Sequence record: NC_047995.1
Length of the DNA: 64,000 nt
Direction: 5' to 3' (one strand)
Of the stretch, positions 23,272-59,549 are shown in pieces. Made by a program: the position numbers and the translations under genes. The notes beneath the pieces are model-generated. The model searched no databases, was not told the DNA's origin, and was given only the letters and a program-made list of their open reading frames with translations. Numbering within the stretch: position 1 is the stretch's first letter; each line of letters starts with the position of its first letter.

Positions 23272-23324
23272 GCATAAATCTGGCTAAAATAGCTATATAC
23301 ACGACCATGCGCCCATGATACTAT
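23272..23324 (+). promoter_or_regulatory. Early promoter class A, copy 1
   Basis: GCATAAATCTGGCTAAAAT-5-TATACA-17-TACTAT. Confidence 0.75.
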
Positions 23325-23378
23325 ATAGATGTTGCGCAATGATGCGTAGCACATACAACTACTGCCAAGGGGCATACA

Positions 23379-24089
23379 GTGAAAGCAGCAAACTTTGATA
23401 AAGCATTCAACGCGAAAGACGAAGCAACTTTGAACGCATACGCAGCGCAAATCACCTCAGCACTTAATGCTCTGGGACGCTACGACCTGAAATTCGAAAT
23501 CATCTTCGGCACTGACCCTTACGGCGAGCGCCCTGATTTTGTGAACGACCCTAACGGCTTCTGTGTGTATCAGAATGGCATTGACGTTTTCGATATCTAC
23601 ACCCCGACTGAAAAACAGATGGAAGGCGATGCGTCTGATGCCTTCATCTACAGTCGCCTCGTAGGCGCAACGCAAGATGTGTTGTGGGGCAAAGTTGTTT
23701 CTGACAATGACGTTGCAGAAATCGCCGAGCACCTGAACGACTCGCTCCCACGTGTGGGGCGTATCTTCAACGAATCAGATCGCACCATGCTTCAACAAAT
23801 CGCCGACGACCTGAACGCGCAGTTAGTTCGTGGCGATGCAAAAGTGATTGTGACTGAGATCGATACGAACGAGCGCCGCCTGATGTTCGTAGGCTGGGAC
23901 CTTGAGGCAGATGAATGTACAGACGAGTATGGCTACTTCATCGATCTGCCATACACTGATGTGACAGGCGAAGATGCAAACTACAGCATCACATACGCAG
24001 GCTACCCGCACCCTGAACACGATTATTCATTCAGCTCCGCAGACCTTGCAGCACTTGCGCCTGAACTTGAACAACTTGACGTAGCATAA
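23379..24089 (+). CDS. Acidic hypothetical early protein
   Basis: GTG start after AAGGGG RBS, first gene after class A promoter. Confidence 0.75.
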   Translation: MKAANFDKAFNAKDEATLNAYAAQITSALNALGRYDLKFEIIFGTDPYGERPDFVNDPNGFCVYQNGIDVFDIYTPTEKQMEGDASDAFIYSRLVGATQDVLWGKVVSDNDVAEIAEHLNDSLPRVGRIFNESDRTMLQQIADDLNAQLVRGDAKVIVTEIDTNERRLMFVGWDLEADECTDEYGYFIDLPYTDVTGEDANYSITYAGYPHPEHDYSFSSADLAALAPELEQLDVA

Positions 24090-24104
24090 CAAACAACACT
24101 GACT

Positions 24105-24128
24105 GCGGGGTTACGGCCCCGCTTATTT
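24105..24128 (+). terminator. Terminator-like hairpin (UACG loop)
   Basis: GCGGGGT-TACG-GCCCCGC-TTATTT. Confidence 0.6.
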
Positions 24129-24155
24129 CAAATACAAACTGCCAAGGGGCATACA

Positions 24156-24524
24156 ATGAAAATCGAAACTATCGTAAAAGCATTCGCAGAAAACAACATG
24201 GGGCCAATCAGCGCATTCGCTGAGTCAATTATGTCTCGCCTGATTGACTGCCCTGATACAATCTCCCTCGTACCGTGCAACGTTGACGAGTACCGCGGCC
24301 TGAACCTGATGTACAAAGACCTTGAGATTCTGCTGATTCTCTTCCCTGCCTCACATGGCGATACACCTGAGTATAATATGGGCAGTGACTGGCTTGAGGT
24401 TGTCGCTTCATGTGACGCAGGCTATGAGACAGACGCTGATGATATCGCGCATATCATTCAGAGCAAGATTCTCGCAGACTTATCGCACCACACAGCGTTA
24501 CTTGATAAGTATGTAGACAAATAA
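24156..24524 (+). CDS. Acidic hypothetical early protein
   Basis: Same 18-bp RBS leader as 23379 gene. Confidence 0.75.
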   Translation: MKIETIVKAFAENNMGPISAFAESIMSRLIDCPDTISLVPCNVDEYRGLNLMYKDLEILLILFPASHGDTPEYNMGSDWLEVVASCDAGYETDADDIAHIIQSKILADLSHHTALLDKYVDK

Positions 24525-24569
24525 TAGGCTGAAAGCGCCATAGCAATGTGGCGCACAATATCGTACTAT
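24517..24569 (+). promoter_or_regulatory. Early promoter class A, copy 2
   Basis: ACAAATAATAGGCTGAAAG-5-TAGCAA-17-TACTAT. Confidence 0.65.
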
Positions 24570-24617
24570 GTAATCTCTAGCGCAATGACGCGCTCAACAC
24601 TGAAAGAGGCAACAACA

Positions 24618-24863
24618 ATGTCAGAGAAACAAATCACCATCGACGTAATCGCAGACGTAACATCGCCAACAGAAGTTGTGTTTGAAGATGGCGAGACTTC
24701 TACTCAATGGCTCGCGCCGTTCGATCTGCGCCTGACTGTATCACTGAACTGCGGCCCTGCTGGCGTGCCAGAAGTGAACATCATCGGCGATGAAGATGAA
24801 CTGAAACGCTTCTTAGCCGCGAACGATCAATTCGTAGACGCTGAAATCGTAGACGTTATCTAA
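24618..24863 (+). CDS. Small acidic hypothetical protein
   Basis: GAGG RBS before ATG 24618. Confidence 0.7.
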   Translation: MSEKQITIDVIADVTSPTEVVFEDGETSTQWLAPFDLRLTVSLNCGPAGVPEVNIIGDEDELKRFLAANDQFVDAEIVDVI

Positions 24864-24872
24864 CAACACATT

Positions 24873-24902
24873 AAGCGGCGCTTCGGCGCTGCTTTTCTAT
24901 TT
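24873..24902 (+). terminator. Rho-independent terminator
   Basis: AAGCGGCGC-TTCG-GCGCTGCTT-TT. Confidence 0.75.
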
Positions 24903-24918
24903 CTGACCTAGAGCCGCT

Positions 24919-25425
24919 ATGAAAAATCAATATCTCATTCTTCGCATGAACGCCTCTGACCTGTATGACCGCACGTTTCTGATGCGTGGCCTTAACATGA
25001 AGCGCCTTGAAAGCGCTATCGGCGTTATCGCCGTAGTAGGCACAGGTCTGTTAACGCCTAACTCTAAAATGTATCATCTGTCTCGCGTTCGACTCGACCT
25101 GCTTGCGTCTGACACGCAACAAAGCTGGGGACGACTGAGCTGGTCAGGCGTAGACGATCATCTCATTGATTCAGGTATGAGTCGCCTGCCGCCTGAGTTG
25201 TTCAAACGAATCGTGGCGATGCGCACTAATCGTATCTACCACGAAGTCGATACGACGATCCCCGAAGCGTTTCGTGATCGCCACACAGAGCTGGTGTACA
25301 CGCAGAGCGCCGTGCGCAAAGTGATCAATCGTGAGAAGACAGGCCGACTCGAAGACTTCTCTGTAGAAGAACTCGTAGAGCACCTGAAAGACAGACTCGG
25401 CGCTACTGTCACAATCAAGCTGTAA
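24919..25425 (+). CDS. Hypothetical protein
   Basis: 168 aa ORF. Confidence 0.7.
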   Translation: MKNQYLILRMNASDLYDRTFLMRGLNMKRLESAIGVIAVVGTGLLTPNSKMYHLSRVRLDLLASDTQQSWGRLSWSGVDDHLIDSGMSRLPPELFKRIVAMRTNRIYHEVDTTIPEAFRDRHTELVYTQSAVRKVINREKTGRLEDFSVEELVEHLKDRLGATVTIKL

Positions 25426-25488
25426 CAACTGACTAACGTGTGGCGTTACGGCGCCACATCATCACAACTTAATAGAGAGAATCACATC

Positions 25489-26097
25489 ATGTCTATCGTA
25501 ACCTTCTTCGCAAAACGTTCTTACGCCTCACTTGGTGCAGGCAACTTCACTATCGCTGCATCGCAGGTGCAAGAGTTGGCTGAGGCTGAATGCTTCGTTG
25601 TGTACACCAACACAGGCTTAGGCAACACGTTCGCAGTGAAGAACATCACAATCACACCTGTTGACGAAAACAACGTGCGTGTGTCGTTCGACCCTCTGAC
25701 CGACGTTCATGCGCTGCCGTCTTCGATTCTCCCTAAAGAGCTTTTGGACGAATCTGCCGAACGTGTCGTAATGCCTGACGAAGATATGCGTGAGGTGCCA
25801 CGCTTCTGCATCGCCAACGATGCTTCTGGCAACAACCCCAATCTGCTGCAACTTAACCTCAACTGCCGTGAACGTTTCGTGCAGTATCATGGTGGCATGT
25901 GTACGCTGACCGAGTTGGTGCTGGCTCTGTTCGAGACAGGCATTCACATCTCTGACATTCACCACGGCGTGAAACAGAAAAGCAACCACGCTGCCGTGCT
26001 CGCACAATATCCCCGCACCGTGTTTGAGCTGAACAAAGACAACGGCGTGACGCAAGACGATTTGCCTGTACTTGCTCGCATGACCGTGTTAATGTAA
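25489..26097 (+). CDS. Hypothetical protein, paralog of next gene
   Basis: Shares C.+VYT..G, +T+T.VD...V++.F and E+PRF.I..D with 26158-26742. Confidence 0.7.
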   Translation: MSIVTFFAKRSYASLGAGNFTIAASQVQELAEAECFVVYTNTGLGNTFAVKNITITPVDENNVRVSFDPLTDVHALPSSILPKELLDESAERVVMPDEDMREVPRFCIANDASGNNPNLLQLNLNCRERFVQYHGGMCTLTELVLALFETGIHISDIHHGVKQKSNHAAVLAQYPRTVFELNKDNGVTQDDLPVLARMTVLM

Positions 26098-26157
26098 TAC
26101 CTGACTGCGGCGTTACGGCGTCGCACACAAACAACTTCAATTGAGAGAGACACTATC

Positions 26158-26742
26158 ATGGCAATGACCGTCACCGCATTCATCAAGACAAACGAGAAGA
26201 CTCTGGCTACTGGCGAGATTCTGATTAAGCGCCCACACTTCGAAGCGTTCTGTGAGTGTCAGGTCTGCATCGTCTACACGACAGGCAAAGAGCAAGGTAG
26301 CGCCAAAGCCTACGTGCTGTCTGACCTCACGCTGACCATCGTTGATAAAGAGCATGTGAAGATGACCTTCAACGACAAGCAGCCTATCGACTCTGCGACC
26401 ATTCGTGAGTATCAGTATGACGAACGCGAAGGTGTGGAGGTTGCTGCGGAGAATCCTGAGGCAGTTGCTGAGATGCCTCGCTTCTCTATCTCGTCTGACC
26501 TGAGCGCTGAAACTCGCGTGTCGCTGCCTTACGCTGTGCGCATGTTGATTGCTGAATACAAGTGTGGCTTATTCAACACCGCGACGTTCAAGCGCCGCAT
26601 GACGTGCCAGAAATTCAAAGTAGTCTCTCTTACTACTCGCGCTCGCCATGAGCCTGGTAGTCCCTACACAATCTTCCGTCACCGCCTGAGCCAGCTCGCT
26701 CTTATCTCTGACGGCAAGAACAATATCAACGTCTATCTGTAA
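26158..26742 (+). CDS. Hypothetical protein, paralog of previous gene
   Basis: As above. Confidence 0.7.
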   Translation: MAMTVTAFIKTNEKTLATGEILIKRPHFEAFCECQVCIVYTTGKEQGSAKAYVLSDLTLTIVDKEHVKMTFNDKQPIDSATIREYQYDEREGVEVAAENPEAVAEMPRFSISSDLSAETRVSLPYAVRMLIAEYKCGLFNTATFKRRMTCQKFKVVSLTTRARHEPGSPYTIFRHRLSQLALISDGKNNINVYL

Positions 26743-26751
26743 ACGAACATC

Positions 26752-26774
26752 GCCTCGCATTGTGCGGGGCTTTT
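26752..26774 (+). terminator. Rho-independent terminator
   Basis: GCCTCGCA-TTG-TGCGGGGC-TTTT. Confidence 0.65.
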
Positions 26775-26790
26775 CTATTTGGAGAATGCT

Positions 26791-27051
26791 ATGCACCACT
26801 ACACCCGCGAAGAACTGGAAGCTATGAACTGCATCGAGCTGGACCAGATTGCAAACGAACGCGAACTGCTGGAAGACAAAGATGAAGACGACGATCTCCC
26901 AGACGAGTTGCTTATCGGTATGATTCTCGACGACCAGAACGAACAGCAACTGGCGGACGAAGAAGCCGAAGATAAGCAACGCGCCGAAGACGACCGCGAT
27001 CCACGCATCAATCGCCGTGACGGTCAAGACGGTTCGGACGACTACTGCTAA
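26791..27051 (+). CDS. Small acidic protein with Rho_N/HeH-like helical motif
   Basis: YTREELEAM...EL..IA.E..+......L..ELLI.MIL pattern. Confidence 0.55.
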   Translation: MHHYTREELEAMNCIELDQIANERELLEDKDEDDDLPDELLIGMILDDQNEQQLADEEAEDKQRAEDDRDPRINRRDGQDGSDDYC

Positions 27052-27054
27052 AAC

Positions 27055-27085
27055 AAAAGGGCTGCCATTGCTGGTGGCCCTTTTT
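27055..27085. terminator. Bidirectional-type terminator
   Basis: AAAAGGGCTGCCA-TTGC-TGGTGGCCCTTTTT. Confidence 0.75.
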
Positions 27086-27090
27086 CATTT

Positions 27091-27098
27091 CTGTAAAT
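27091..27098 (+). promoter_or_regulatory. CTGTAAAT motif directly after terminator
   Basis: 31 nt before ATG 27130. Confidence 0.45.
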
Positions 27099-27129
27099 GC
27101 CTCGTACATTCAACAACGCGAGACATTCA

Positions 27130-27501
27130 ATGCGCCGCTTCCTCACTGTATTCAACGTCACTCAACAAGAGTTCGACGACCGCCGCTTCTATCAACACAA
27201 GCTGAACATCGTTACAACCATGCGTCGCACACACGGCGTACTGCTGGTTGTGCGTGAGACAGGCAAAGTGTTCGTAGCCACAACCGCGTCGTACCAACAA
27301 GCAGAAGAATACGACCTGCGTCGTGTGGACTTCTCCGCTCCTAGTGAAGTCACCGTAGAGTTGGGTGAGCGCTTCACTGAATTGAAACAGGCAATCGCAA
27401 ACAACCTGCAGGACAAAAGCATCCGCTACTTCGGCCGCACTTTGAATCTCAACGAAGTGCAACACGCTCTCTACCACACGCAACTGGAGATCATTACGTG
27501 A
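27130..27501 (+). CDS. Hypothetical protein
   Basis: Track ORF 27097-27501; ATG 27130 preferred. Confidence 0.65.
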   Translation: MRRFLTVFNVTQQEFDDRRFYQHKLNIVTTMRRTHGVLLVVRETGKVFVATTASYQQAEEYDLRRVDFSAPSEVTVELGERFTELKQAIANNLQDKSIRYFGRTLNLNEVQHALYHTQLEIIT

Positions 27502-27743
27502 AAGACATTGCAGCATCACTGGGCGCTCGCTTCGCTGTTACTTCGGCCGAACGTTGCTCCTCTCGTAAGAAAGCGCAGCCTCGCAACAAGACGCTCTCGG
27601 CAGCAACGACCGCAGACATTCATAACGCAGTCGAGCGCTTGTCTATTAAACTGAACCTCACGCGCTCTAATACAATCGAGTTGGCGATCAAGGAGCTGTG
27701 TGAGAAACACGGCATTGCAATAGGTAACACTGATGGTATCTGA
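27498..27743 (+). CDS. Ribbon-helix-helix (CopG/Arc-like) DNA-binding protein
   Basis: TLSAATTADIHNAVERLSIKLNLTRSNTIELAI pattern. Confidence 0.6.
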   Translation: MKDIAASLGARFAVTSAERCSSRKKAQPRNKTLSAATTADIHNAVERLSIKLNLTRSNTIELAIKELCEKHGIAIGNTDGI

Positions 27744-28666: not shown

Positions 28667-28971
28667 ACGGTAACTACTGGCGATACGATATAGACAAACG
28701 TGCAGGTAACCTGACGCTGCCTCATCTGCCGAAAGAGTTCACTGCTACCATCAAAGACAACCTGACGTTGATGCACACGCCAGTTAAGATTGATGGCACG
28801 ACCATTGTGACCTCACAAGGCAAGACATGTGGTAGCCTGCAATTTCTCACAGGCGCCAACATTCTTATCTGGTCATCGTTTGAGTCCTACAGGTTCACGC
28901 TGATTGTCGATGAAGTGACTCGTATCAGACTCAAAGCAACCGACCGTCAATCTGCTGAACTCTGCAAATAA
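28654..28971 (+). CDS. Hypothetical protein
   Basis: 105 aa coupled ORF. Confidence 0.65.
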   Translation: MGDLNGNYWRYDIDKRAGNLTLPHLPKEFTATIKDNLTLMHTPVKIDGTTIVTSQGKTCGSLQFLTGANILIWSSFESYRFTLIVDEVTRIRLKATDRQSAELCK

Positions 28972-29016
28972 CTGGCTGAAATAGCCATTTAGTCTGATAC
29001 GCTCCTATGATATACT
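28964..29016 (+). promoter_or_regulatory. Early promoter class A, copy 3
   Basis: GCAAATAACTGGCTGAAAT-5-TTTAGT-17-TATACT. Confidence 0.75.
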
Positions 29017-29061
29017 ATATGTGAGCGCTATGCTCATACAACCAACGCTGAGGAGCGTATC

Positions 29062-29511: not shown

Positions 29512-29512
29512 G

Positions 29513-29581
29513 AGATTTGTGAAGGGTCTTCTGTGAGGGCCCTTTGAAAATCCTAAACCCTAAGCTGAGGAGCTTAACATG
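29513..29581 (+). repeat. 69-bp intergenic hairpin+RBS cassette, copy 1
   Basis: 62/69 identical to 29896-29963. Confidence 0.9.
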
Positions 29582-30233: not shown

Positions 30234-30249
30234 TCTGGAGGAGCTTAAC

Positions 30250-32701: not shown

Positions 32702-33762
32702 ACAAGACCATTGGCCTCATGATTGACGAAGACGTAATGAACTGGCTGGACATGCTTATGCCGCAAGAACTTCGCCGCGTTATCGACGCACTGAATAACA
32801 TTGTGTACTCTCGCCGACAGGAATTGACGGTCGAACGTCTGACCGAAGATGAAGACGTAGGCGCTCTGTCTCACAAAGAGCTGGAGATCATTCTACGCCA
32901 CGCTTCTCCTAAGCATGAGTATGACACGTCCGTTCTGTCTAACGAGCAATTGCTCCGCTTGGCGATGGACGCGCAGTTCATCATCCAGTACACGCTGCCG
33001 TGCCACTGTTCTCCTATCATGGTCAAACGCGCTTTCGCTAACGGCCTTACGTGCTCGCTGCTGGGTGGCTTCTCGAATCGTGCTGATATCATCATGGCTG
33101 TTCATCATTGGGAGTACGGCCTGTCTAACATCTCACTTGATGCCGTTACCGATAGCGATGTACGCCCAGACGATCAAGGTCTGTACCTGTGCTACGACGA
33201 ACACAAACAAATTCGCTATGGTCGTCTGTTCAAGAACGCGAACGAAGGCTGGACGTTCCACGAATCGTATTCGAACGGAGGTTCGACTTCCTGGCTGGAA
33301 GCAGGCGAAGGTAAAACCCTCGACGCAGATGACTTGCCAATCTGCCTGCTGTCTCACTGGGTATTCGTAGCGCCCGACCGGTCGCCGTCAATCATTCGCA
33401 AAGAGACAGACATTAAACGCCTGTCTGACACACAACGCATCTTCCTGTATCTGCGTAGCCTGAGTCCTCACGTTAAAGCTGAAATCGTTACTCACTTTGA
33501 CGGCGTACTGGACAATCGCAAGTTCACGTCTGTTGATCAGATTGGTCGCCTGACAGAAACGGACTGGCGCAATGCTGCTATCGCTATCGGTGAAGAAGAA
33601 CGTGGGCAGGAAGGTAAACACTTCTGGGATGACCAGGGTGCTTGGGCTTGTTTCGTTGCTGTGCTCAACTCTCTGTGCTATGACATGGAGACACGCGACT
33701 TCCAACCTCAATACGAATATCAAGCTAACGACGACACTCTGGACGAAGACAACAATGGCTAA
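32698..33762 (+). CDS. Hypothetical protein
   Basis: GGAG RBS, 354 aa. Confidence 0.75.
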   Translation: MNKTIGLMIDEDVMNWLDMLMPQELRRVIDALNNIVYSRRQELTVERLTEDEDVGALSHKELEIILRHASPKHEYDTSVLSNEQLLRLAMDAQFIIQYTLPCHCSPIMVKRAFANGLTCSLLGGFSNRADIIMAVHHWEYGLSNISLDAVTDSDVRPDDQGLYLCYDEHKQIRYGRLFKNANEGWTFHESYSNGGSTSWLEAGEGKTLDADDLPICLLSHWVFVAPDRSPSIIRKETDIKRLSDTQRIFLYLRSLSPHVKAEIVTHFDGVLDNRKFTSVDQIGRLTETDWRNAAIAIGEEERGQEGKHFWDDQGAWACFVAVLNSLCYDMETRDFQPQYEYQANDDTLDEDNNG

Positions 33763-34288
33763 ATCACTCGGCGTATACATGACTTACATTCTGCGACACA
33801 AGCCGCAGGATATCGGGATCGCAATGGACACTCAGGGCTGGGTGTCTGTTCTGGACTTTCTCCAGAAAGCGAAGTACGTTAAACAGGTCACTCTCGAAAT
33901 GCTGATTGCCGAAGTTGAGGCAGACGAGAAAGGCCGCTTCGAGTTCAACTCCAATCGCTCGCGCATTCGCTGCGTTCAAGGTCACTCGGTTGAGAATGTC
34001 ATTTTGAACCTCGAGCCGTTCACGGAACTTGGGCCTCTGTATCACGGCACGGCAGAAAAGAACGTTGCGTCGATCATGCACGAAGGGATTACGAAACGCC
34101 GACGCAAACATGTTCACATTAGTCGGGAGCAAGAAACTGCCGAGAACGTTGGACGCCGTCACGGTCTACCTGTTGTGTTCGAGATTGATACGCAGGCAAT
34201 GATCACTCACGGCTACAAGTTCTACCGCGCAGAGAATGGTGTGATCTTAACGGACCATGTACCTTCTCGCTATATCAAGTTGGTGTGA
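33755..34288 (+). CDS. kptA: RNA 2'-phosphotransferase, Tpt1/KptA family
   Basis: ILRH, GWV, RIRCVQGHS, LYHGT, RKHVHIS, NGV.LTDHVP. Confidence 0.92.
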   Translation: MAKSLGVYMTYILRHKPQDIGIAMDTQGWVSVLDFLQKAKYVKQVTLEMLIAEVEADEKGRFEFNSNRSRIRCVQGHSVENVILNLEPFTELGPLYHGTAEKNVASIMHEGITKRRRKHVHISREQETAENVGRRHGLPVVFEIDTQAMITHGYKFYRAENGVILTDHVPSRYIKLV

Positions 34289-34289
34289 T

Positions 34290-34691
34290 ATGGAAAAGAC
34301 GTACATGACGCATTGGGGATCGCGCTATGTGCGGTCCTCTTCCGGAAAGTGGTATTCAGTTCATGGACGTGAAGGTACGTGGGTAACTAATCGCTACGGT
34401 ACTTCATTCTACCGCAGCGGCTCCGAAGTATGGCGTGATATAACTCTGGCCGATCGTGAGTCGTTGGAACGCGAACTTATCAAACGCACCAGTGAAGATT
34501 ACAACGAGCAAAAGCGTAGGTATGACTACTGGGGAAGATTGGTACGAGCGATTGCCCGCTGTTCAGAAGAGGAAAAGAATGAGCATACGGCAGAACTTGC
34601 CGAGATGATTGAAGCGCTTAGACAGCAATTCTATGGACAGAAAGTACAGCAACTGAGCACAATTCTGGACGAAATCGCCGTTAAAGAATAG
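34290..34691 (+). CDS. Hypothetical protein
   Basis: ATG 1 nt after kptA stop. Confidence 0.7.
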   Translation: MEKTYMTHWGSRYVRSSSGKWYSVHGREGTWVTNRYGTSFYRSGSEVWRDITLADRESLERELIKRTSEDYNEQKRRYDYWGRLVRAIARCSEEEKNEHTAELAEMIEALRQQFYGQKVQQLSTILDEIAVKE

Positions 34692-34709
34692 GCTCGTTCG
34701 TGCTATAAT
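34657..34709 (+). promoter_or_regulatory. Early promoter class A, copy 4 (box inside upstream CDS)
   Basis: GCACAATTCTGGACGAAAT-5-TTAAAG-17-TATAAT with TG extension; 8-bp hairpin 34720-34739. Confidence 0.75.
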
Positions 34710-34760
34710 AAAGATGAACGCTGTACAATCCTGTACAGCTACTTACATGAGGACATGTAT

Positions 34761-37744: not shown

Positions 37745-38008
37745 ATGGCTGTAGGCTTCGTAAAAGATGATGGCGTTAACGATACCATCGAAGCTAACTT
37801 GAATAACGAGATTGACCGCGCTCGCTCTGAATTGATGGGCAAAGGTACAACTCATTGCGTCAACCCTGACTGTGGTGCGGAGATTCCTCTCATGCGCCGT
37901 GTAGCGATGCCGAATGCTCGCTACTGCTTACCTTGCCAGTCAGGTCATGATGGTTCTGCTATCAGTCATTACAATCGTCGTGGCTCAAAAGATTCTCAAC
38001 TGAGGTAG
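37745..38008 (+). CDS. TraR/DksA C4 zinc-finger protein
   Basis: N-terminal DDGVND, C...CG.EIP..RR.A.P.A.YC..CQ. Confidence 0.88.
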   Translation: MAVGFVKDDGVNDTIEANLNNEIDRARSELMGKGTTHCVNPDCGAEIPLMRRVAMPNARYCLPCQSGHDGSAISHYNRRGSKDSQLR

Positions 38009-42528: not shown

Positions 42529-43509
42529 ATGCGATTCGGTTTCGCCTGCAAGCTGATTAACCAACAAGGTAAACAGCCATACCCAAACAAGAGTCTAAGC
42601 TACTCACACTTTGCAAAGCTCGACCGTGACGCACAACGCCAGAAACTTCGTGAAGTGGTGACTGTTAATCTGACTTCGCTGTATGACATGATCGCACACG
42701 TAGGTCAGTTGCGTACCGACATGCGCATGTTCCGTATCACAAGCGAATTGCTTCCACTGTATACTCACCCACTCGTCATGCCGCTGTATAACGAACCCGA
42801 CCTGTGTAAGTTTGTCGAACACTGGCTGTGGAAATGCGGTGGAATTGCTCGTGGTGCTGGCGTGAGACTTTCATTTCACCCAGGGCAATTCACGGTGCTC
42901 GCGTCCGATCGACCTGACGTTGTGCTCAACTCAATCCACGAACTTGAGTACCATGCGTACTGTGCCTATCACATGGGATATGGTCGACGCTTCCAAGACT
43001 TCAAGATCAACATTCACCTGAGCGGTAGACTTGGTGCTGCGGGATTCAGACAGGCATTCGGAAAACTTTCTGAGCCTTGCCGAAAGATGTTGACCGTAGA
43101 GAATGACGAAATCACTTCGAGCATTGAGGACGTCCTGACTCTTTCAGACCTGTGTCCGATAGTGCTGGATATTCATCATCACTGGGTAATGACTAACGAG
43201 TACATACAGCCGACCGATGATCGTGTGCAGCAAGTCATAGAGTCGTGGCGCGGCGTAACACCCGTCGCGCATTACTCTGTGTCCCGTCCTGAGTTCGTAC
43301 CGTCACGCGGGCTGCCTGATCAAAACAAGCTGTCTGCTAATCGTATGCAGTTACGTGCCCATGCTGAATACTATCACAATGAAGACGTAAACGAGTGGGC
43401 GCTTTCGTTCGCTGATTTTGACCTAATGTGCGAGTCAAAAGCGAAGAATCTAGCGAGACTGAAATTGGCGTGTTTTAGCCGCAACTCTGCAAATAAATGG
43501 ACAAAATGA
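42529..43509 (+). CDS. uvsE: UV damage endonuclease (UvdE/UvsE)
   Basis: MRFGFAC, MFRITSELLP, RLSFHPGQF.VL.S, INIH, LTVEND, P.VLDIHHH, H.S, R.HA.Y, DLMCESKAKN. Confidence 0.92.
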   Translation: MRFGFACKLINQQGKQPYPNKSLSYSHFAKLDRDAQRQKLREVVTVNLTSLYDMIAHVGQLRTDMRMFRITSELLPLYTHPLVMPLYNEPDLCKFVEHWLWKCGGIARGAGVRLSFHPGQFTVLASDRPDVVLNSIHELEYHAYCAYHMGYGRRFQDFKINIHLSGRLGAAGFRQAFGKLSEPCRKMLTVENDEITSSIEDVLTLSDLCPIVLDIHHHWVMTNEYIQPTDDRVQQVIESWRGVTPVAHYSVSRPEFVPSRGLPDQNKLSANRMQLRAHAEYYHNEDVNEWALSFADFDLMCESKAKNLARLKLACFSRNSANKWTK

Positions 43510-43542
43510 GGCTTGTTTCTGTTGGTTACCCTGTGATACACT
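43489..43542 (+). promoter_or_regulatory. Early promoter class A, copy 5 (box inside uvsE 3' end)
   Basis: GCAAATAAATGGACAAAAT-5-TTGTTT-18-TACACT. Confidence 0.75.
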
Positions 43543-45726: not shown

Positions 45727-46937
45727 CCGAAGCTGAATTGAGTATCGACTACACCGTGAACGCAGCAAAAACTATCTTTGCCAACGGCACTGTGGAACAA
45801 CGTGATGCGTTACGCACCATCGCCAACACTGTGCTGTCCGGCAAGGCTGCATTCGAATACGAAGAATGTGCGCTCGACACGGAAGCAACGTACCGTGTTC
45901 TGGAAGAAATCCAATTCTCTGGTGATGGCAGGCAGATGCTACCGTCAGATGAAATCGTATCTCTCGATAGCATTCTGCATAAGAAGTGGCGCGAAGCCTT
46001 CTTCGTTGCAGTTAAGAACATGGCACTGACCATGCACTGCACGGACCCAGCTACTGCTGGTCAAGGCTACTGGCCGAAAGACCATCACAAGTGCGGTCTG
46101 CTTGTGCATCGCGCTTTCCTGTGGATGGTTTCATCGCACGGTCTCCTCAGTCTGCTGTCAGAGAAGGCCGCGCATAAAGTAAGTCACACGCGTCTGCCTC
46201 AATTCATCGTAGCGTTTCAGGTAGCAGGCAAAGACGAAGGTCACGCTCGTCATTACACGATGTACCATCCAGAAGAAGATGCTGGTACTATCAATGTAAG
46301 CAACATTCTGCCTGACAGCTACAAAGAGCAACTGATTGCTGAGTCTCGGGCGAACCGTCCTGAGGAGTATTATTCCGTACCGCACCTGTCGTTCGACGAT
46401 TTGATTGAACTGTGTGAACGTCTGAACGTCATTGGACCTAACTCCGCATCAACCTCCAAATGCAATTGTGAGATTGACGACGATTGTGATTGCGACGAAG
46501 ACGACGATGAAGTTATGACCCGCGCCGACTTCGACCCTGACGAGATTGGCGATCTGCGTGATCACTTCTGGCAGAAGTTCGGCTACCCTGACGATGAACC
46601 TGATATGCCTGACGAAGATATCTGGATTCCGGGCGTGTCCCAAATGGAAGTGCAAGTCGATCTGCCTACCGTGCGTCTGGAAACGCAAAATCAAATCGCA
46701 CCTCGTTCAGGCGGGAAGATGAAGTCCCGTGCCCAGAGACCTATGAGCAAGCGCCAGATGATTCTGCTATCTCCTGCTCAACAAATCTGGCATGAGCTGG
46801 ACAATGAGAAAGAGTTCGGTGATCGTAGCTTCGCTATCACTCTCGTTTCTCGCTCGACCTGTGGCGTTAGTCGCGCAGTCGCTACTACCCGTGAAGCGCT
46901 CGCAATTGCTACCGCACTGATGGACGTAAGCAAATAA
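45723..46937 (+). CDS. Hypothetical protein with acidic Cys-rich patch
   Basis: 404 aa; KCNCEIDDDCDCDEDDD segment. Confidence 0.75.
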   Translation: MTEAELSIDYTVNAAKTIFANGTVEQRDALRTIANTVLSGKAAFEYEECALDTEATYRVLEEIQFSGDGRQMLPSDEIVSLDSILHKKWREAFFVAVKNMALTMHCTDPATAGQGYWPKDHHKCGLLVHRAFLWMVSSHGLLSLLSEKAAHKVSHTRLPQFIVAFQVAGKDEGHARHYTMYHPEEDAGTINVSNILPDSYKEQLIAESRANRPEEYYSVPHLSFDDLIELCERLNVIGPNSASTSKCNCEIDDDCDCDEDDDEVMTRADFDPDEIGDLRDHFWQKFGYPDDEPDMPDEDIWIPGVSQMEVQVDLPTVRLETQNQIAPRSGGKMKSRAQRPMSKRQMILLSPAQQIWHELDNEKEFGDRSFAITLVSRSTCGVSRAVATTREALAIATALMDVSK

Positions 46938-46982
46938 CTGGTCAGAATAGCGCTTCTTCGTGAGGCGCTTCTATGATATAAT
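46930..46982 (+). promoter_or_regulatory. Early promoter class A, copy 6
   Basis: GCAAATAACTGGTCAGAAT-5-TTCTTC-17-TATAAT. Confidence 0.75.
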
Positions 46983-47050
46983 CATAGATAGAGCAATGTC
47001 GCTCTCAACGTTGTATCAACCATACGTTTAAACACGGGAACTGTCATAAT

Positions 47051-51259: not shown

Positions 51260-52201
51260 ATGACTAAAATGGTTGCACTGCCTTTCGCTTCTTCTGAACA
51301 ACGCAATCGCTTCTTCGATCAACGCGTAGGTGACCTCAAACTTAACGCCGTCTGGAACTACGTTGTATCAAACAACAATCCGAACTGGAAAGGCGATCCT
51401 CTGCTGCACCACATGCACTACCATTCGACCGAGCATATGAAGCAGGTAACTGCTCTGGCTCTCTGGTTGCTGGATAAAGAAGCACAACAGCCGTGGCAAT
51501 ACGATACTGGAGCCTTGCCTCTTGCTGTGGCCTGTATGTTCCACGACATGGACCACTCACTTGGTCGCCTCAACGATGAAAGTAATATTCGTCTGGCGCA
51601 AGAGGCTTTCAAGAAGTATCTGACCGTGTGTGAAGATGAACGTATTAAAGATCACGAAGCAATCATCCTAGACCTGATTGACATTACGCGCTTCCCGTAC
51701 ATGAAGAACCGTCAGCCGAAGAATCTGATTGAGCGTTGCATTCGTGATGCGGACATTCTCTACGGCATGCAGGATGATGCACTGGACGTAGTGTTGTTCT
51801 CGTTGCGCCGCGAAGTAAATCGTAGTGTAAATGAAAACGTGTATTTCCAGGCAGACCAGTGGGCACAAGGCCGTGTTGACTTCATTCGCAGTGTTGAAAT
51901 TTACTGCCCGTCTGCTGACGCACTGATGGAATGGCTACTGGCGGAAGACAACGACCACAACCATCAAGATAAGATTGACGACTGGATGCGTCACGAAGTC
52001 AGTTTCCGAGACACGTCCGCGCATAAACTCAAAGCCAATGACGTGCTGTTCATCGACACGCAGGAAGACAGCACACCGAAGCGCCGTCTGATTGAACGTG
52101 TCGAAACAGTTCACCCGTATCTCAATATCTACTTTGATGGCGGTGAAGCTATCTCGCTACGTGATGGTGAGAGTTGTGTGGTTGTGGAACGTCGCAAATA
52201 A
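51260..52201 (+). CDS. HD-domain phosphohydrolase (class I PDE-like) with small C-terminal beta domain
   Basis: YHSTEH...V, ACMFHDMDH, IRDADI. Confidence 0.8.
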   Translation: MTKMVALPFASSEQRNRFFDQRVGDLKLNAVWNYVVSNNNPNWKGDPLLHHMHYHSTEHMKQVTALALWLLDKEAQQPWQYDTGALPLAVACMFHDMDHSLGRLNDESNIRLAQEAFKKYLTVCEDERIKDHEAIILDLIDITRFPYMKNRQPKNLIERCIRDADILYGMQDDALDVVLFSLRREVNRSVNENVYFQADQWAQGRVDFIRSVEIYCPSADALMEWLLAEDNDHNHQDKIDDWMRHEVSFRDTSAHKLKANDVLFIDTQEDSTPKRRLIERVETVHPYLNIYFDGGEAISLRDGESCVVVERRK

Positions 52202-52245
52202 TAGGCTGAAATAGGCATGTACTGACTAGGTGCCTGTGATATACT
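52194..52245 (+). promoter_or_regulatory. Early promoter class A, copy 7
   Basis: GCAAATAATAGGCTGAAAT-5-TGTACT-16-TATACT. Confidence 0.7.
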
Positions 52246-52970: not shown

Positions 52971-52972
52971 TC

Positions 52973-53203: not shown

Positions 53204-53205
53204 TC

Positions 53206-53514: not shown

Positions 53515-53515
53515 C

Positions 53516-54094: not shown

Positions 54095-54135
54095 CTAAAC
54101 CTGAGCGCTTACGGGCGCTCTACTGGAGAAACATT

Positions 54136-55752: not shown

Positions 55753-55787
55753 ACCGTAAACAATACCTATTATTGAAGGGAAACAAA

Positions 55788-56207
55788 ATGAAAAAGAAAA
55801 CCGTACTTGTCCTGAACCGCATAGCACTTATCATGAACGACGACATGGTGCAGAAGTTTGGCGAACTCGCTAACGAGAATCGTGAACGTGCCTCCGACCT
55901 GAACATCATCATGCTGTCCAAGATGCAACAGGCTGTGAACTTGGCTCTGGCTAATGAGAATCCAGAAGCGTGTTGTCGTGCTGATATCGCGTGGACTGAA
56001 TGTGGCCTTATCTCAACGTCTGGCTTCTTTGTGATTGCAACTACGGCAGACGATGAAGTGACGAACCACTTCGAAGACCACGACTACCTGAACCATTTGC
56101 GTTCGATTGAACGTATTGCACTGGAGAGCGGGTTCAAGTTGCAAGTCGAGCCTATTCGTGCGTTGTCTCCGTTCGATAAAACCGAAATCCCTGCATCAAT
56201 GAAATGA
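55788..56207 (+). CDS. Hypothetical protein
   Basis: AAGGG RBS before ATG 55788. Confidence 0.65.
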   Translation: MKKKTVLVLNRIALIMNDDMVQKFGELANENRERASDLNIIMLSKMQQAVNLALANENPEACCRADIAWTECGLISTSGFFVIATTADDEVTNHFEDHDYLNHLRSIERIALESGFKLQVEPIRALSPFDKTEIPASMK

Positions 56208-56215
56208 GGTGACCC

Positions 56216-56515
56216 ATGACACGCAAACAAATCCTGATGAATGATGTTGCTATCGTCCTGACAATGAGTGAGCGCCGTGCGTTCCTCGGTCCGAAAGCTG
56301 ACGGTTTTGTGTATCTACCCTCGAAAGAGGCCCTCACGAAGTTTGAGGCGCATATCAAGAAGTACGGCAGTCGTGATGACTATGCGTTTATTGAGCACCG
56401 TGAGCTACACTCTCTGAACTCTGCTGGCATTGTCGCTATTGCTCATGCTGTCGAATCTGACTCTGAGCGCCCTTGGCTGTGGACGAAAGAAGACTTCCGC
56501 GTTAAGCTCTGGTAA
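56216..56515 (+). CDS. Hypothetical protein
   Basis: GAGG RBS, 99 aa. Confidence 0.7.
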   Translation: MTRKQILMNDVAIVLTMSERRAFLGPKADGFVYLPSKEALTKFEAHIKKYGSRDDYAFIEHRELHSLNSAGIVAIAHAVESDSERPWLWTKEDFRVKLW

Positions 56516-56568
56516 GCATAAAACTGGCTAAAATCGTGGTATCAATCCGAACCGTCCTATGATATACT
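56516..56568 (+). promoter_or_regulatory. Early promoter class A, copy 8
   Basis: GCATAAAACTGGCTAAAAT-5-TATCAA-17-TATACT. Confidence 0.78.
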
Positions 56569-56620
56569 AGAAGCGTAGCTTGTGCTGCGCTTTTATAACA
56601 TATGTCTGAGGAGACAACAA

Positions 56621-57088
56621 ATGCTTGAAGAAATCAAACCAACCTTATCCGATATGGAATTGCAGGACACGATCATGGAAGCAGGCGTTGCCAAGATCAT
56701 CGAACACAAACCTGAGTGGATTGATGTGGCGACCGCAGGTGCTCGTATGTATCTGGTGGTAGTCAGCCAGCTCGGGGGTCCGATTCCTGAAATCCGTTTC
56801 GTTCACAACCAGAAGCCGTGCAAGATTCAATTCAAGTTGCGCGAATCCGAAGGCACCGACGAGTTCGTTGCGAACGATATCGACCACAAAACTCAAATGG
56901 CAATCCTTGACGAAATGTTGACGACCGCCGAAGCGAGTCCGAATGGTCACACGCTGCTGGACCTTGCCGTGTGCTCCGCCCGTCTATTCATGATTGGTTA
57001 CGACGGCCTTGCAGGTACTGTCGAAGTTATTCGCTTCCGTCATGACCAGAAGAACTATTCCATGAACCTGATTGAAGAAGGTAAATAA
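56621..57088 (+). CDS. Hypothetical early protein
   Basis: GAGGAG RBS before ATG 56621. Confidence 0.7.
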   Translation: MLEEIKPTLSDMELQDTIMEAGVAKIIEHKPEWIDVATAGARMYLVVVSQLGGPIPEIRFVHNQKPCKIQFKLRESEGTDEFVANDIDHKTQMAILDEMLTTAEASPNGHTLLDLAVCSARLFMIGYDGLAGTVEVIRFRHDQKNYSMNLIEEGK

Positions 57089-57089
57089 C

Positions 57090-57755
57090 ATGAAACCAGA
57101 TTACACTCTGCTCAAACGTAGCAAGGTTGATGTTAACCGCTTCGCTTTCGTGTACGACGGCGACCTGCTTGCCAACTTTACCGCCTCCCAGTTGTATCGG
57201 ACGCTGGAGAAACTCAATAGCCCGAACGTGATTAAAGATGTTGATGTGCTCTGGCGTGACGGTACGCGCACCGTTGAAGAATTGCGTGTGACCGAGCATC
57301 GCCACTTTGTTCGTTTCGATACGTGCGAATATGACCACGCTATCTGCCTGATGATGCGAGCACAAGGTCTGCCTATTGAACTGTCTGTCCCTGTAGACGT
57401 GCGTAGGCTATTCGACGCGCATGGATCACTTATCTCTGAGATTCGTGTACCGTCTGAATTTGTCGCAGACCTCAAGCCTGCTCTTGAGCGCTTCATTCCT
57501 GGCGACGAAGATGACTGGGACGAAGATGCGGATGATGACTTCGACGATGAAGATGAAAGCGACTTCGACGAGGAGGAGTTTGGATTCCGTCCAGAAGACT
57601 TGCGTCCGCAACTAAGCGACTTCGGATATCGTGCGGCCGACTGGGTTGTCACTCTGACTGATGAACAAATCAGCGAAGTACACACTCTTGAAGTGGGTAT
57701 TGACCCAGACATTGAACTGCCTCGTGCGGCTGATGCGAAGGAAGAATTTTTCTAA
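57090..57755 (+). CDS. Hypothetical protein with acidic tract
   Basis: AAGG RBS before ATG 57090. Confidence 0.7.
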   Translation: MKPDYTLLKRSKVDVNRFAFVYDGDLLANFTASQLYRTLEKLNSPNVIKDVDVLWRDGTRTVEELRVTEHRHFVRFDTCEYDHAICLMMRAQGLPIELSVPVDVRRLFDAHGSLISEIRVPSEFVADLKPALERFIPGDEDDWDEDADDDFDDEDESDFDEEEFGFRPEDLRPQLSDFGYRAADWVVTLTDEQISEVHTLEVGIDPDIELPRAADAKEEFF

Positions 57756-57946
57756 TGAAAACTATTAACGAACAGGTCAAGGAATTGAAACAGCACGGCG
57801 TGCTTATCGTTGAAGAACACCAGAAACACACGCTGCCTGATTTGACCTTCACGCTTGATTGCCTGTGTATGCCACACACTAAGCGGGAAGTAGAGACAAC
57901 CACGCGCGGCCGTGTTGTTAAGATTCGCCTGACAAACATCCACTAA
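57755..57946 (+). CDS. Small hypothetical protein
   Basis: TAATG coupling, 63 aa. Confidence 0.6.
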   Translation: MKTINEQVKELKQHGVLIVEEHQKHTLPDLTFTLDCLCMPHTKREVETTTRGRVVKIRLTNIH

Positions 57947-57958
57947 CTTTGTGGTCTT

Positions 57959-58033
57959 GGCCCGCCCATCCAGAAATGCTCACCCCCAATGAGGTGTCTC
58001 GCGCAGAGGCCTGATGGTCACCGGGTCCTTTTT
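57959..58033 (+). ncRNA. Candidate structured RNA element (nested stems with two internal hairpins, T5 tail)
   Basis: GGCCCG/CGGGTC outer stem, CCATC(C)AG/CTGATGG, CTCA/TGAG and GTCTC/GAGGC hairpins. Confidence 0.3.
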
Positions 58034-58089
58034 AGAGCGCACTACCGAGTACGCTGTACAAAGTAAATCACAATCAACAGGAGGCTGTT

Positions 58090-58461
58090 ATGAAGTTTAA
58101 CGATGTATCTCACAAAGCGCAGGTGGTTCTCATGGCGAGTGCGTTTGGCGGTGTGATGGAAGTTCTGTCCCGTAGCATGGACGATGAAGGTCGCAAGTTC
58201 CTGGAAGTTGCGCTACGCCGTGTCGGTCTGACAGTTGAGGAGTTCCAAGCTCTTATCAACGATCTCGACGAACCTACAGGTAAAGAAATCATTGCTGTTA
58301 TGGAAACAGCGCAAGCCGAAGAGTCTGCGTGTGAGGCAGAAGACGAAGACGAAGAAGAATCTGCTGACGACGACTCTGATACGGACGCTGACGGTTGGCA
58401 AGATCTGCAAGAAGATCGCATCTGTCTCGTATGCAACCACGAATACTGCGTCTGTCACTAG
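58090..58461 (+). CDS. Helical protein with acidic tail and C-terminal Cys cluster, paralog of 29961-30233
   Basis: AGGAGG RBS; shared N-terminal domain; ends CLVCNHEYCVCH. Confidence 0.7.
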   Translation: MKFNDVSHKAQVVLMASAFGGVMEVLSRSMDDEGRKFLEVALRRVGLTVEEFQALINDLDEPTGKEIIAVMETAQAEESACEAEDEDEEESADDDSDTDADGWQDLQEDRICLVCNHEYCVCH

Positions 58462-58464
58462 TCT

Positions 58465-58517
58465 GCATAAATCTGGACAAAATGAGGCTTGTCTCAAATA
58501 GCTGCCTGAACTATACT
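58465..58517 (+). promoter_or_regulatory. Early promoter class A, copy 9
   Basis: GCATAAATCTGGACAAAAT-5-TTGTCT-17-TATACT. Confidence 0.8.
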
Positions 58518-58523
58518 ATATAG

Positions 58524-58718
58524 ACAGCGAGACAAGTGCTCTCTGTGTGCCTTTGTACTGCTTGACCATGTGTTTCCGATTTTCCCGGCACATGGTCCTT
58601 TTTAAAGTCGGCTTCCAACGAGGCTGCTTTAAAAAGGGTTCGATACCCTTTGAGCGCGTCGGGCTTTACGCGGTTTCCGCCTGCCGTGCTCTCATGCTAA
58701 ACCGCAAAGGAAATTGAA
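58524..58718 (+). ncRNA. Candidate ~195-nt structured leader/ncRNA with T-loop-like hairpin
   Basis: Perfect 9-bp and 10-bp abutting stems, AAGGG-TTCGATA-CCCTT, alternative pairing next to the RBS. Confidence 0.45.
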
Positions 58719-59447
58719 ATGCCTACTACTTCACGTCCTAAGACAGAAGACAAGTTCTCCCGTGTTCGTGCCTCTAAGAACTCTCCTGAGCGTCAGGCAG
58801 CGGTCGCTAAGAAAACTCCACGAGGCCCGAAAGGTTCCACGAACACCGGAGGCTTCAAAAGGGATGAAGTTGTGATGTTAATCAGCTCGCCAAAGATTCG
58901 TGATGAAGAACGTGTGTACAATCTCGTACATGCAATTCTGAGCGCGTGGAAAGCAGATGTTGGTCATGCCGAACATACAGCTGCCTCTGCCGGCATCATC
59001 AAAGTGTCACGTCGTAAGATTGAAGGCGCCCTGCGTGACCTCAAGAATACGCGCTTCACTAAAATCCCGACACTCATTAATGATATCCTGACAGGCTCTG
59101 ATATCTGCGCTGAGTTTGGAATGTGGGTGTATGTCGAGCACGACAGTCCTGATTGGATTTTCGTCCGTCTGCCTGATGACAGTACACCTGTGATTCGTGC
59201 TGATATCAGTTGTGACAAGACAGGCGAAACGTCTGCGTCTATCACAACGTCCAGTGAAGCTCTGCTGGAAACGTTCAGCGAAAGCGATGATGAGATCGAG
59301 ATACTTGAATGTAACGATCAAGATATCGAAGACCTCGAAACGAAGGCGATGCGCAAACAGCTAATCGACAAGGGCATCATTAAGCCCGAAGCTGCCGACA
59401 AGCTGCATCGCCCTGACTTGATGAAGCTGTTAGCGTACTACGCATAA
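58719..59447 (+). CDS. Hypothetical protein, basic N-terminus and C-terminal HeH-like motif
   Basis: AAAGGA RBS; ends DIEDL...R..LID.GI...A.KL...L.KLL. Confidence 0.75.
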   Translation: MPTTSRPKTEDKFSRVRASKNSPERQAAVAKKTPRGPKGSTNTGGFKRDEVVMLISSPKIRDEERVYNLVHAILSAWKADVGHAEHTAASAGIIKVSRRKIEGALRDLKNTRFTKIPTLINDILTGSDICAEFGMWVYVEHDSPDWIFVRLPDDSTPVIRADISCDKTGETSASITTSSEALLETFSESDDEIEILECNDQDIEDLETKAMRKQLIDKGIIKPEAADKLHRPDLMKLLAYYA

Positions 59448-59495
59448 GCAATAACGAGCAGGCAGTGTAGTAGCTGCCTGCTATCTGCGAAGTAT

Positions 59496-59549
59496 GCAGA
59501 AAACTGGACAAAATCGTGGTTGTTATCTGACGGCCACCAATGCTATACT
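59496..59549 (+). promoter_or_regulatory. Early promoter class A, copy 10
   Basis: GCAGAAAACTGGACAAAAT-5-TTGTTA-18-TATACT. Confidence 0.78.

Follow-up and report, generated by a model that had tools for sequence, protein, structure and literature searches.

A 19-bp upstream box at fixed distance from the -10 in putative early promoters of Erwinia phage Alexandra and related jumbo phages: a candidate bipartite UP-type element

Box promoters in the Alexandra window

We describe here a 19-bp box that lies upstream of ten putative early promoters in a 64,000-nucleotide stretch of DNA (this whole stretch is called the window below), which is 100% identical to record positions 186001-250000 of Erwinia phage vB_EamM_Alexandra (NC_047995.1 / MH248138.1), a jumbo myovirus of 266,532 bp in the genus Alexandravirus. 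An initial annotation, made from the letters of the window, had proposed the ten copies, and every one of them was found again with the coordinates and sequence assigned to it. The layout it described also stands: each box is followed by 5 nt, a hexamer whose first T is invariant, 16-18 nt and a -10 hexamer (TATACT, TATAAT, TACTAT or TACACT), which is indeed often TG-extended (in eight of the ten copies, those at 24517 and 58465 being without TG). The strict pattern GCAN6WGGNNRRAAK is matched at nine window sites, each of them on the + strand (against 0.47 on average, and never more than 3, in dinucleotide shuffles), in agreement with the GCA reported for nine of the ten copies; the exception, at 24517, starts with ACA and ends with AAAG. 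As had been noticed, two boxes (34657 and 43489) fall within the 3' coding ends of annotated genes (gp276 and gp295); four others (24517, 28964, 46930 and 52194) share sequence with the final codons of the gene upstream, whose stop codon is the TAA at box positions 6-8. The promoters and their predicted hairpins are, in window coordinates:

23266-23324, + strand: putative early promoter 1, the first box downstream of a strong terminator (23166-23187); flank from 23266, box 23272-23290 (GCATAAATCTGGCTAAAAT), hexamer TATACA 23296-23301, TG-extended TACTAT 23319-23324.
23330-23351, + strand: predicted 5' hairpin of the promoter 1 transcript, TGTTGCGC-AATGA-TGCGTAGCA, beginning 6 nt past the -10.
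24511-24569, + strand: putative early promoter 2, the weakest copy; box 24517-24535 (ACAAATAATAGGCTGAAAG), containing the gp254 stop codon, hexamer TAGCAA, TACTAT without TG; spacer hairpin GCGCCA-TAGCAATG-TGGCGC (z = -4.2), with compensatory changes in orthologs.
28958-29016, + strand: putative early promoter 3; box 28964-28982 (GCAAATAACTGGCTGAAAT), whose TAA is the gp264 stop codon, hexamer TTTAGT, TG-extended TATACT 29011-29016.
29020-29038, + strand: predicted 5' hairpin of promoter 3, TGTGAGC-GCTAT-GCTCATA, beginning 4 nt past the -10.
34651-34709, + strand: putative early promoter 4, within the gp276 3' end; box 34657-34675 (GCACAATTCTGGACGAAAT), hexamer TTAAAG, TG-extended TATAAT 34704-34709.
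34720-34739: predicted 5' hairpin of promoter 4, with an 8-bp stem.
43483-43542, + strand: putative early promoter 5, within the 3' end of gp295 (a UvdE-type endonuclease); box 43489-43507 (GCAAATAAATGGACAAAAT), hexamer TTGTTT, TG-extended TACACT 43537-43542, spacing 29.
46924-46982, + strand: putative early promoter 6; box 46930-46948 (GCAAATAACTGGTCAGAAT), hexamer TTCTTC, TG-extended TATAAT 46977-46982; spacer hairpin AGCGCTTC-TTCGT-GAGGCGCT (z = -3.1) and 5' hairpin 46990-47005.
52188-52245, + strand: putative early promoter 7; box 52194-52212 (GCAAATAATAGGCTGAAAT), containing the gp312 stop codon, hexamer TGTACT, TG-extended TATACT 52240-52245, spacing 27; spacer hairpin AGGCA..TGCCT (z = -3.6).
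56510-56568, + strand: putative early promoter 8; box 56516-56534 (GCATAAAACTGGCTAAAAT), hexamer TATCAA, TG-extended TATACT 56563-56568.
56572-56591: predicted 5' hairpin of promoter 8, AGCGTAGC-TTGT-GCTGCGCT, followed by TTTTAT.
58459-58517, + strand: putative early promoter 9; box 58465-58483 (GCATAAATCTGGACAAAAT), hexamer TTGTCT, TATACT 58512-58517 without TG.
59490-59549, + strand: putative early promoter 10, with the clade-conserved gp325 downstream; box 59496-59514 (GCAGAAAACTGGACAAAAT), hexamer TTGTTA, TG-extended TATACT 59544-59549, spacing 29; spacer hairpin GTGGTTGTT..GACGGCCAC (z = -3.0) and 5' hairpin 59553-59575.

The whole genome was rebuilt from seven pieces and scanned with a weight matrix, which gave 11 strong copies and 1 weak copy of the box, every one of them on the + strand, in the interval from 209 to 262 kb, and within a block of about 75 small genes. 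The two copies outside the window (record positions 257931 and 262017) stand in front of topoisomerase genes. Real copies scored 19-27, and the best non-promoter match, with no -10 downstream of it, scored 17.

One gene model is touched by these promoters. The annotated start of gp255 (24546-24863), at 24546, is upstream of the predicted -10 of promoter 2 (24564-24569); its orthologs are 240-246 nt long and start past the promoter, and translation probably begins instead at the ATG near 24618, where aaagagg provides a ribosome-binding site.

Conserved positions and spread among related phages

The box architecture is kept in five lineages, namely Alexandravirus, Yoloswagvirus, Rivsvirus, Salmondvirus and Yersinia phage fHe-Yen9-02. 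Within Alexandravirus, boxes occur at orthologous promoters of SNUABM_39, _35, _1, _3 and _33 and of Dickeya phage AD1, and between these orthologs the sequence from box to -10 has diverged almost wholly, with the boxes kept. The same architecture was found in Yoloswag, Rivsvirus SNUABM_5, fHe-Yen9-02 and Salmondvirus JA29, and several copies each were found in uncultivated jumbo-phage contigs of IMG/VR, while BLAST with the 30-mer consensus gave no multi-copy matches outside the clade (unrelated Erwinia, Dickeya and Yersinia phages being without the box). The distance from the end of the box to the -10 is 28 nt (range 27-29) in 83 promoters of 8 genomes, with two Yoloswag outliers at 26 and 31, and is the same in JA29, fHe-Yen9-02 and SNUABM_5; this bears out the assignment of the box to the position of an UP (upstream) element. 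What varies is the centre of the box, which reads TGG(A/T)C, TGGCT or AGGCT in Alexandravirus, TGGTC in Yoloswagvirus and Rivsvirus, CGGCT in the Yersinia phage, and TGTCC in Salmondvirus and metagenomic relatives. The centres of AD1 (TGG(A/T)C) and JA29 (TGTCC) differ even though both phages infect one Dickeya solani strain. Intermediates exist (GTGCCTGAAAT in JA29, CGTCC in fHe-Yen9-02), and G-49 alone is universal in the centre. JA29 promoters have weak -10 elements without TG, and their best-conserved part is the box.

Positions were counted in 40 paralogs (one genome from each of the five lineages), with a numbering that assumes a transcription start 7 nt past the -10 hexamer; on this assumption the box spans -59 to -41, or -65 to -41 with its flank. 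Invariant in all 40 are C-58, A-57, A-55, W-54, G-49, A-43 and A-42, and nearly invariant are A-56, A-44, T-35 (38 of 40), T-62, W-65, A-64, T-50 and G-33 (29 of 40), as are G-48 and G-59, with C-46 in 28 of 40. Because conservation begins abruptly at -65, with an AAsTcT flank, the element is about 25 bp long, and it can be read, flank included, as two tandem 12-bp units AACTnn(G/A)CAAA(A)T. In the 12 Alexandra paralogs it holds about 27 bits between -65 and -41, far above the -35 region. Blocks of A/T and G/C alternate with a period of 10.5-11 bp from -65 to -15, a pattern that would be expected of DNA read or bent on one face.

The core downstream of the box is of sigma70 type (TGnTAtAaT, with A-11 and T-7 in 100% and T-12 in 99% of 82 promoters); on the + strand there are 12 instances of TGNTATAMT, 7 of which come after a box. 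A generic -35/-10 scan recovered two of the ten box promoters, and its sites overall were no more numerous than in shuffles; because so few were recovered, the view that the -35 is weak holds. The further statement that the hexamer is conserved only at its first T is half right, in that this T is invariant in the ten, and G-33 is kept as well in 29 of the 40 paralogs, at 17-bp spacing. Since T-35 and G-33, the most important bases of a -35, are retained, nothing would be needed to replace -35 contacts, and the proposal of a factor that substitutes for them is not supported in that form. Two other promoter types were tried and rejected: a sigma54 promoter (GG-N10-GC), whose GC is not conserved and whose spacing is wrong, and the TGGACA of the box as a true -35, which lies 31-33 bp from the -10 with no other -10 17 bp downstream.

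The UP consensus of Escherichia coli selected by Estrem and Gourse is reportedly nnAAAWWTWTTTTnnAAAAnnn at -59 to -38, and is said to be bound by two C-terminal domains that belong to RNA polymerase's alpha subunit (alpha-CTDs), as at rrnB P1. In the box, AAAWW (-57 to -53) and AAAA (-45 to -42) are in register with this consensus, each preceded by C, and the distal T-tract (-52 to -47) is replaced by (A)CTGG(A) with its invariant G-49. About two thirds of the box would thus resemble a full UP element. The observation that the box also holds conserved G/C positions for which an UP element has no need applies to G-49 and C-58.

Promoter classes, hairpins and cassettes

No RNA polymerase (RNAP) subunit is present among the 345 annotated genes of Alexandra, and a sigma factor, gp244, is annotated. 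The phage was placed within the RNAP-less Lu11/PaBG group, which carries a sigma70-like gene (PMC7412058), and jumbo phages without RNAP are taken to rely on that of the host (PMC13282480; PMC7412058). Accordingly, a phiKZ-like virion RNAP was ruled out as reader of the box on the strength of the genome annotation and of membership of this group; with no RNAP annotated and core elements of sigma70 type, the promoters are not of the kind used by the phage polymerases of phiKZ or N4.

Promoter motif classes were read from oriented upstream regions (genome-wide 9-mer over-representation gave nothing useful). About 45 copies of (a)aTCTGTAAA(t/c)A, the CTGTAAATA class, are co-oriented with genes and lie ahead of replication and recombination genes and of gp244; their motif is similar to the TATAAATA of T4 late promoters, and they probably form a middle promoter class. 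About 20 copies of (a/c)GCTAATTT, with a -10-like TAATTT that has a GC prefix, lie ahead of structural genes and are probably a late class read by gp244. The sigma gene and examples of the two classes are:

12498-13535, + strand: gp244, phage sigma factor (PHROG 17569, E = 7e-159), with a CTGTAAATA-class motif upstream and no box.
Window 1203 (record 187203), 12457, 13538 and 18706; record 144013(-), 177815(-), 254523, 255166 and 262001: (a)aTCTGTAAA(t/c)A.
Record 63472, 76624, 83413, 101997, 116823, 158266, 162249, 169508 and 170450 (all -); window 21013 (record 207013, +): GCTAATTT.

Neither class is sigma70-like, and the box class is the sole sigma70-like promoter class in Alexandra. As gp244 is preceded by a CTGTAAATA-class motif, the sigma gene belongs to a later tier, and as the box class alone should be readable by unmodified host holoenzyme, it would be the first tier by elimination. 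It is from this elimination (one sigma70-like class, no RNAP of its own, two other classes elsewhere) that the label 'early' draws its support. Our literature searches found no transcriptome for the clade and no papers on promoters of Alexandravirus, Yoloswagvirus or Salmondvirus.

Hairpins accompany the box promoters in two positions. Those at the 5' end begin 4-8 nt past the -10 in 10 of 12 copies (mean z = -2.2), which is compatible with the assumed start site; early transcripts would then open with a stem-loop at about +1, and orthologs show compensatory changes. This stem-loop may stabilise the 5' end or act as a nut-like site. Its loop holds CAAT in 10 of 40 cases against a background of about 10% (p = 0.004), an enrichment that is yet not general, and CAAT was rejected as a conserved loop motif. 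Strong hairpins between box and -10 occur in 4 of 12 Alexandra promoters and in about 40-50% of those of two relatives (z < -2.7), and cover the -35 position in the window:

24536-24563, 46949-46976, 52213-52239 and 59515-59543: spacer hairpins.

In orthologs of the 24517 promoter the stems GCGCCA/TGGCGC, GCGCCG/CGGCGC and GCGCTATA/TATAGCGC show compensatory change, and in the full set of 40 promoters spacer hairpins exceed permuted arms by a modest margin (p about 0.02). The spacer hairpin is a feature of a subset, probably the terminator of the upstream gene embedded in the promoter; a universal promoter hairpin like that of N4 was rejected, as it is strong in a third to a half of copies with a small set-wide excess. 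Pairing of the box with downstream sequence (TGGCT-GAAAT-AGCCA; TGTCC with GGACA) was likewise rejected, being seen in a few copies only. Rfam gave no match in the window. Canonical terminators also occur inside early operons (window 24105, 24873, 26752, 27055, 42481 and 51198).

Box promoters behave as cassettes. Copies are repeated between small open reading frames of a hyperplastic region and adjoin indels between relatives; past the first cassette, each of the genomes compared has its own gene content, and one additional cassette plus gene is found in both SNUABM_39 and SNUABM_35. SNUABM_1 (L010) carries the identical 19-mer GCAAATAACTGGACAAAAT at four non-orthologous promoters (2371, 7843, 21870 and 30309), two of which share the next 8 nt (agctcttt), an identity that may be a sign of gene conversion between cassettes. 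The variant AATAGGCTGAAAT is found at non-orthologous promoters of different genomes.

Several other features of the region deserve mention. Hairpins of 4-5 bp that present a Shine-Dalgarno GAGG or AAGG in their tetraloop, 5-9 nt ahead of the ATG, number 10 on the + strand against 1.5 expected:

23363, 24140, 29046, 29563, 29945, 56604, 58077, 59588 and 61249 (window): Shine-Dalgarno hairpins.

Their stems vary (TGCC/GGCA, CGCT/AGCG, AGCT/AGCT, GTCT/AGAC, TACT/AGTA), and they may serve translational control or be the target of a RegB-like nuclease. The product of gp282 (37745-38008) is an early-region DksA/TraR-type zinc-finger protein (PF01258, PHROG 54), kept in Yoloswag, JA29, AD1 and fHe-Yen9-02. 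Proteins of this type bind the secondary channel of RNAP, and gp282 may inhibit host rRNA promoters, which phage promoters with A/T-rich discriminators may escape. The window further encodes a Cas4-like nuclease annotated as 'CRISPR/Cas system associated' (gp232, 5901-6986), an RNA ligase (gp242, 11604-12071) and a Tpt1 RNA 2'-phosphotransferase (gp275, 33755-34288), the last two suggesting an RNA-repair module that possibly acts in counter-defence against tRNA nucleases.

Candidate readers of the box and comparison with known systems

With moderate confidence, we read the box as a lineage-specific bipartite UP-type element for the host alpha-CTD, set in 'über' early promoters that are packaged as 5'-hairpin cassettes resembling promoter-early stem-loop (PeSL) cassettes. 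As the phage has no RNAP of its own, its injected DNA must capture the host sigma70 holoenzyme at once, and each early promoter would do so through four parts: a usually TG-extended -10, a minimal -35 (T-35 and G-33), a G/C clamp at -39 to -36, and the bipartite UP-type element at -65 to -41. The A-tracts at -57 to -52 and -45 to -41, each with a C before it and one helical turn apart, would provide two minor-groove docking sites for alpha-CTD; the proximal alpha-CTD would sit directly beside region 4 of sigma. The pyrimidine-purine step and G/C at -50 to -46 and -60 to -58 would lie on the same helix face with the major groove inward, and these G/C blocks may allow the upstream DNA to bend onto the polymerase. 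Box, weak -35, TGn -10 and 5' hairpin (and, in a subset, the terminator-like spacer hairpin) would together make up the repeated cassette of the hyperplastic early region.

Several observations weigh against this interpretation. G-49 and C-58 are kept in 40 of 40 paralogs although UP elements are usually just A/T-rich, and these two positions, G-48, G-59 and the flank are conserved with no obvious role in an UP element; the approximately 27 bits of the Alexandra paralogs exceed what is needed to specify 12 sites and far exceed the -35; and the centre varies by lineage, even between AD1 and JA29 on the same strain, which a single shared host reader does not predict. Moreover, the literature searched holds no experimental start site, timing or footprint for Alexandra or its relatives.

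Since UP function leaves G-49, C-58, the excess information and the TGG/TGT difference unexplained, it is possible, if on balance doubtful, that a phage-encoded DNA-binding protein reads the box or its non-A/T positions (C-58, T-50, G-49, G-48 and the AAsTcT flank), beside or over the sites of alpha-CTD. Such a protein might arrive with the virion as an activator that puts phage promoters first from time zero, or be an early product that shuts the class off once the next tier begins; in a related version, an injected enzyme like T4 Alt would modify alpha-CTD and so give it a preference for this sequence. In a still slightly more tentative form of this proposal, a protein specific to the phage clade would bind the two tandem 12-bp units (-65 to -41) on one face, with or instead of alpha-CTD, either co-injected to favour the first phage promoters or as an early off-switch for the whole class, and TGG, CGG and TGT would be co-evolved 'dialects'. 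The invariant positions, the sharp onset at -65, the surplus of information and the likeness of the 25-bp element to two tandem units all argue for such a reader, as do the lineage-specific centres, which are maintained in diverged genomes including uncultivated relatives and differ on one host strain, the weak TG-less -10s of JA29 beside its well-kept box, and the confinement of the box to the clade in the 30-mer search; T4 Alt, in addition, is an example of an injected factor that tunes early promoters via alpha (PMC2988021). However, the A-tracts and the spacing are explained without an extra factor, a first-tier promoter dependent on a phage protein would require that protein to be packaged, and a Pfam scan limited to the window identified, among the 77 window proteins scanned, no DNA-binding protein (no helix-turn-helix) and no ADP-ribosyltransferase. 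Given that only G-49 is universal in the centre and that intermediates exist, the lineage differences could be drift plus homogenisation of cassettes. Homogenisation by recombination might even account for all non-A/T positions with no reader involved, the A-tracts and core alone being functional, and for such concerted evolution speak the identical 19-mers within one genome (the four copies of GCAAATAACTGGACAAAAT in SNUABM_1), the sharing of AATAGGCTGAAAT across genomes, the variable gene content adjoining the cassettes and the recombination of T4-type PeSL cassettes (PMC4122927). We nevertheless consider it improbable: the spacers adjacent to the box have diverged to saturation in paralogs and orthologs alike, with G-49 and C-58 unchanged in >100 promoters of five lineages, and conversion tracts of just 19-25 bp would be unlikely.

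The centring of the element near -50, its single helix face and pyrimidine-purine step, and an asymmetric two-part shape that is loosely marbox-like might suggest activation of the promoters through a box-bound host protein of the bending or regulatory kind (Fis, IHF, CRP, a MarA/SoxS-type protein or DnaA), but this is very unlikely. The box and its reverse complement, inspected by eye, fit none of the consensus sequences: there is no TGTGA pair (pattern TGTGA-N6-TCACA), the G and C of the Fis pattern (G-N13-C with A/T core) are 13 apart and not 14, and WATCAA-N4-TTR is lacking, so that the earlier exclusion of CRP and Fis is upheld and IHF joins them; the spacing of the marbox recognition elements is 2 bp too long, and a DnaA box is matched at 6 of 8 positions. 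The centre, furthermore, differs among phages of the same host, and the motif occurs in one phage clade only. The least probable explanation of all, which we would hardly expect to hold, has the element act in RNA, where it would mark read-through transcripts for processing or termination. It would suit the overlap of 6 of 10 boxes with the end of the upstream gene and the subset with a hairpin and T-rich run downstream, but the fixed 28-nt distance to the -10 and the retained T-35 and G-33 are promoter features, pairing of the box is not conserved, the excess of spacer hairpins is modest, and Rfam is silent on the window.

Whichever protein reads the box, the takeover of host transcription by RNAP-less jumbo phages has hardly been studied so far, and in this clade promoter motifs sort cleanly into three tiers, the first of which has a very sharp upstream element at a fixed position. 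If alpha-CTD alone reads it, the box would be a natural, high-information, sequence-specific UP element that could inform our view of how alpha-CTD recognizes DNA shape and find use as a strong promoter part of compact size; should a phage protein be the reader, it would represent a new system of early-transcription control, comparable to T4 Alt or MotA/AsiA. Either way, the motif aids early-gene annotation and start-codon correction in about 45 related genomes, and marks the cassette boundaries where early genes shuffle.

Returning to the bipartite UP-type element that we favour, its nearest counterpart, the E. coli UP element, is alike in position (-59 to -41), in the register of its A-tracts (the 5' half of the distal subsite, and the proximal subsite), in adjoining the -35, in the C ahead of the proximal AAAA, which the best UP sequences from selection share, and in its association with very strong promoters. 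The box differs in having (A)CTGG(A) in place of the T-tract, an invariant G-49 and C-58, a flank to -65 and an information content far above that of natural UP elements. UP half-elements, in which G/C is followed by an A/T run, are described as lying about 11 bp apart and being able to replace the -35 (preprint 10.1101/2020.02.05.936344). Sigma38 promoters, for which two such half-elements in place of a -35 are proposed there, share with the box a location upstream of a -10, two half-sites of G/C plus A/T run about 11 bp apart and little -35 information, but involve another sigma factor, variable spacing and low information per half-site, whereas the spacing of the box is fixed. The promoters of Mu Mor/C and P2 Ogr (TGT-N12-ACA at -55) also combine an asymmetric or bipartite site near -50, a weak -35, a good -10 and alpha-CTD involvement; they are, in contrast, middle or late promoters that need an earlier phage protein and have dyad sites, while the box class is apparently first tier and its element a direct repeat.

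Finally, T4-type phages provide the closest parallels to the promoter and to the cassette as a whole. The suggestion of the initial annotation that the boxes belong to a possibly undescribed early-transcription system is not supported in that form, since a precedent is known: the early promoters of T4 are 'über' promoters of the UP/-35/TGn/-10 kind in which further regions follow a consensus, and injected Alt ADP-ribosylates R265 of alpha (PMC2988021). Both sets are first-tier promoters of large RNAP-less myoviruses (in Alexandra apparently so), of sigma70 type with TGn and an upstream A-rich element, with extra conserved positions and competition with host promoters. T4, however, has a good -35 (GTTTAC or TTGAC-like), where Alexandra keeps T-35 and G-33 only; the extra consensus of Alexandra contains G/C and is much sharper, and no Alt homolog is among the 77 window proteins scanned. 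PeSL cassettes were reportedly the subject of work by Arbiol in 2010. They are promoter-early stem-loop cassettes of T4-type phages (Comeau 2014, PMC4122927), and resemble those of Alexandra in being repeated, with an A/T-rich upstream part, a sigma70-like promoter, stem-loops, small early open reading frames and variable neighbouring gene content. The two differ in that the PeSL terminator stem-loop lies just upstream of the promoter, whereas the Alexandra hairpins would lie after the start site and, in a subset, between box and -10, and in that recombination at the Alexandra cassettes is putative.

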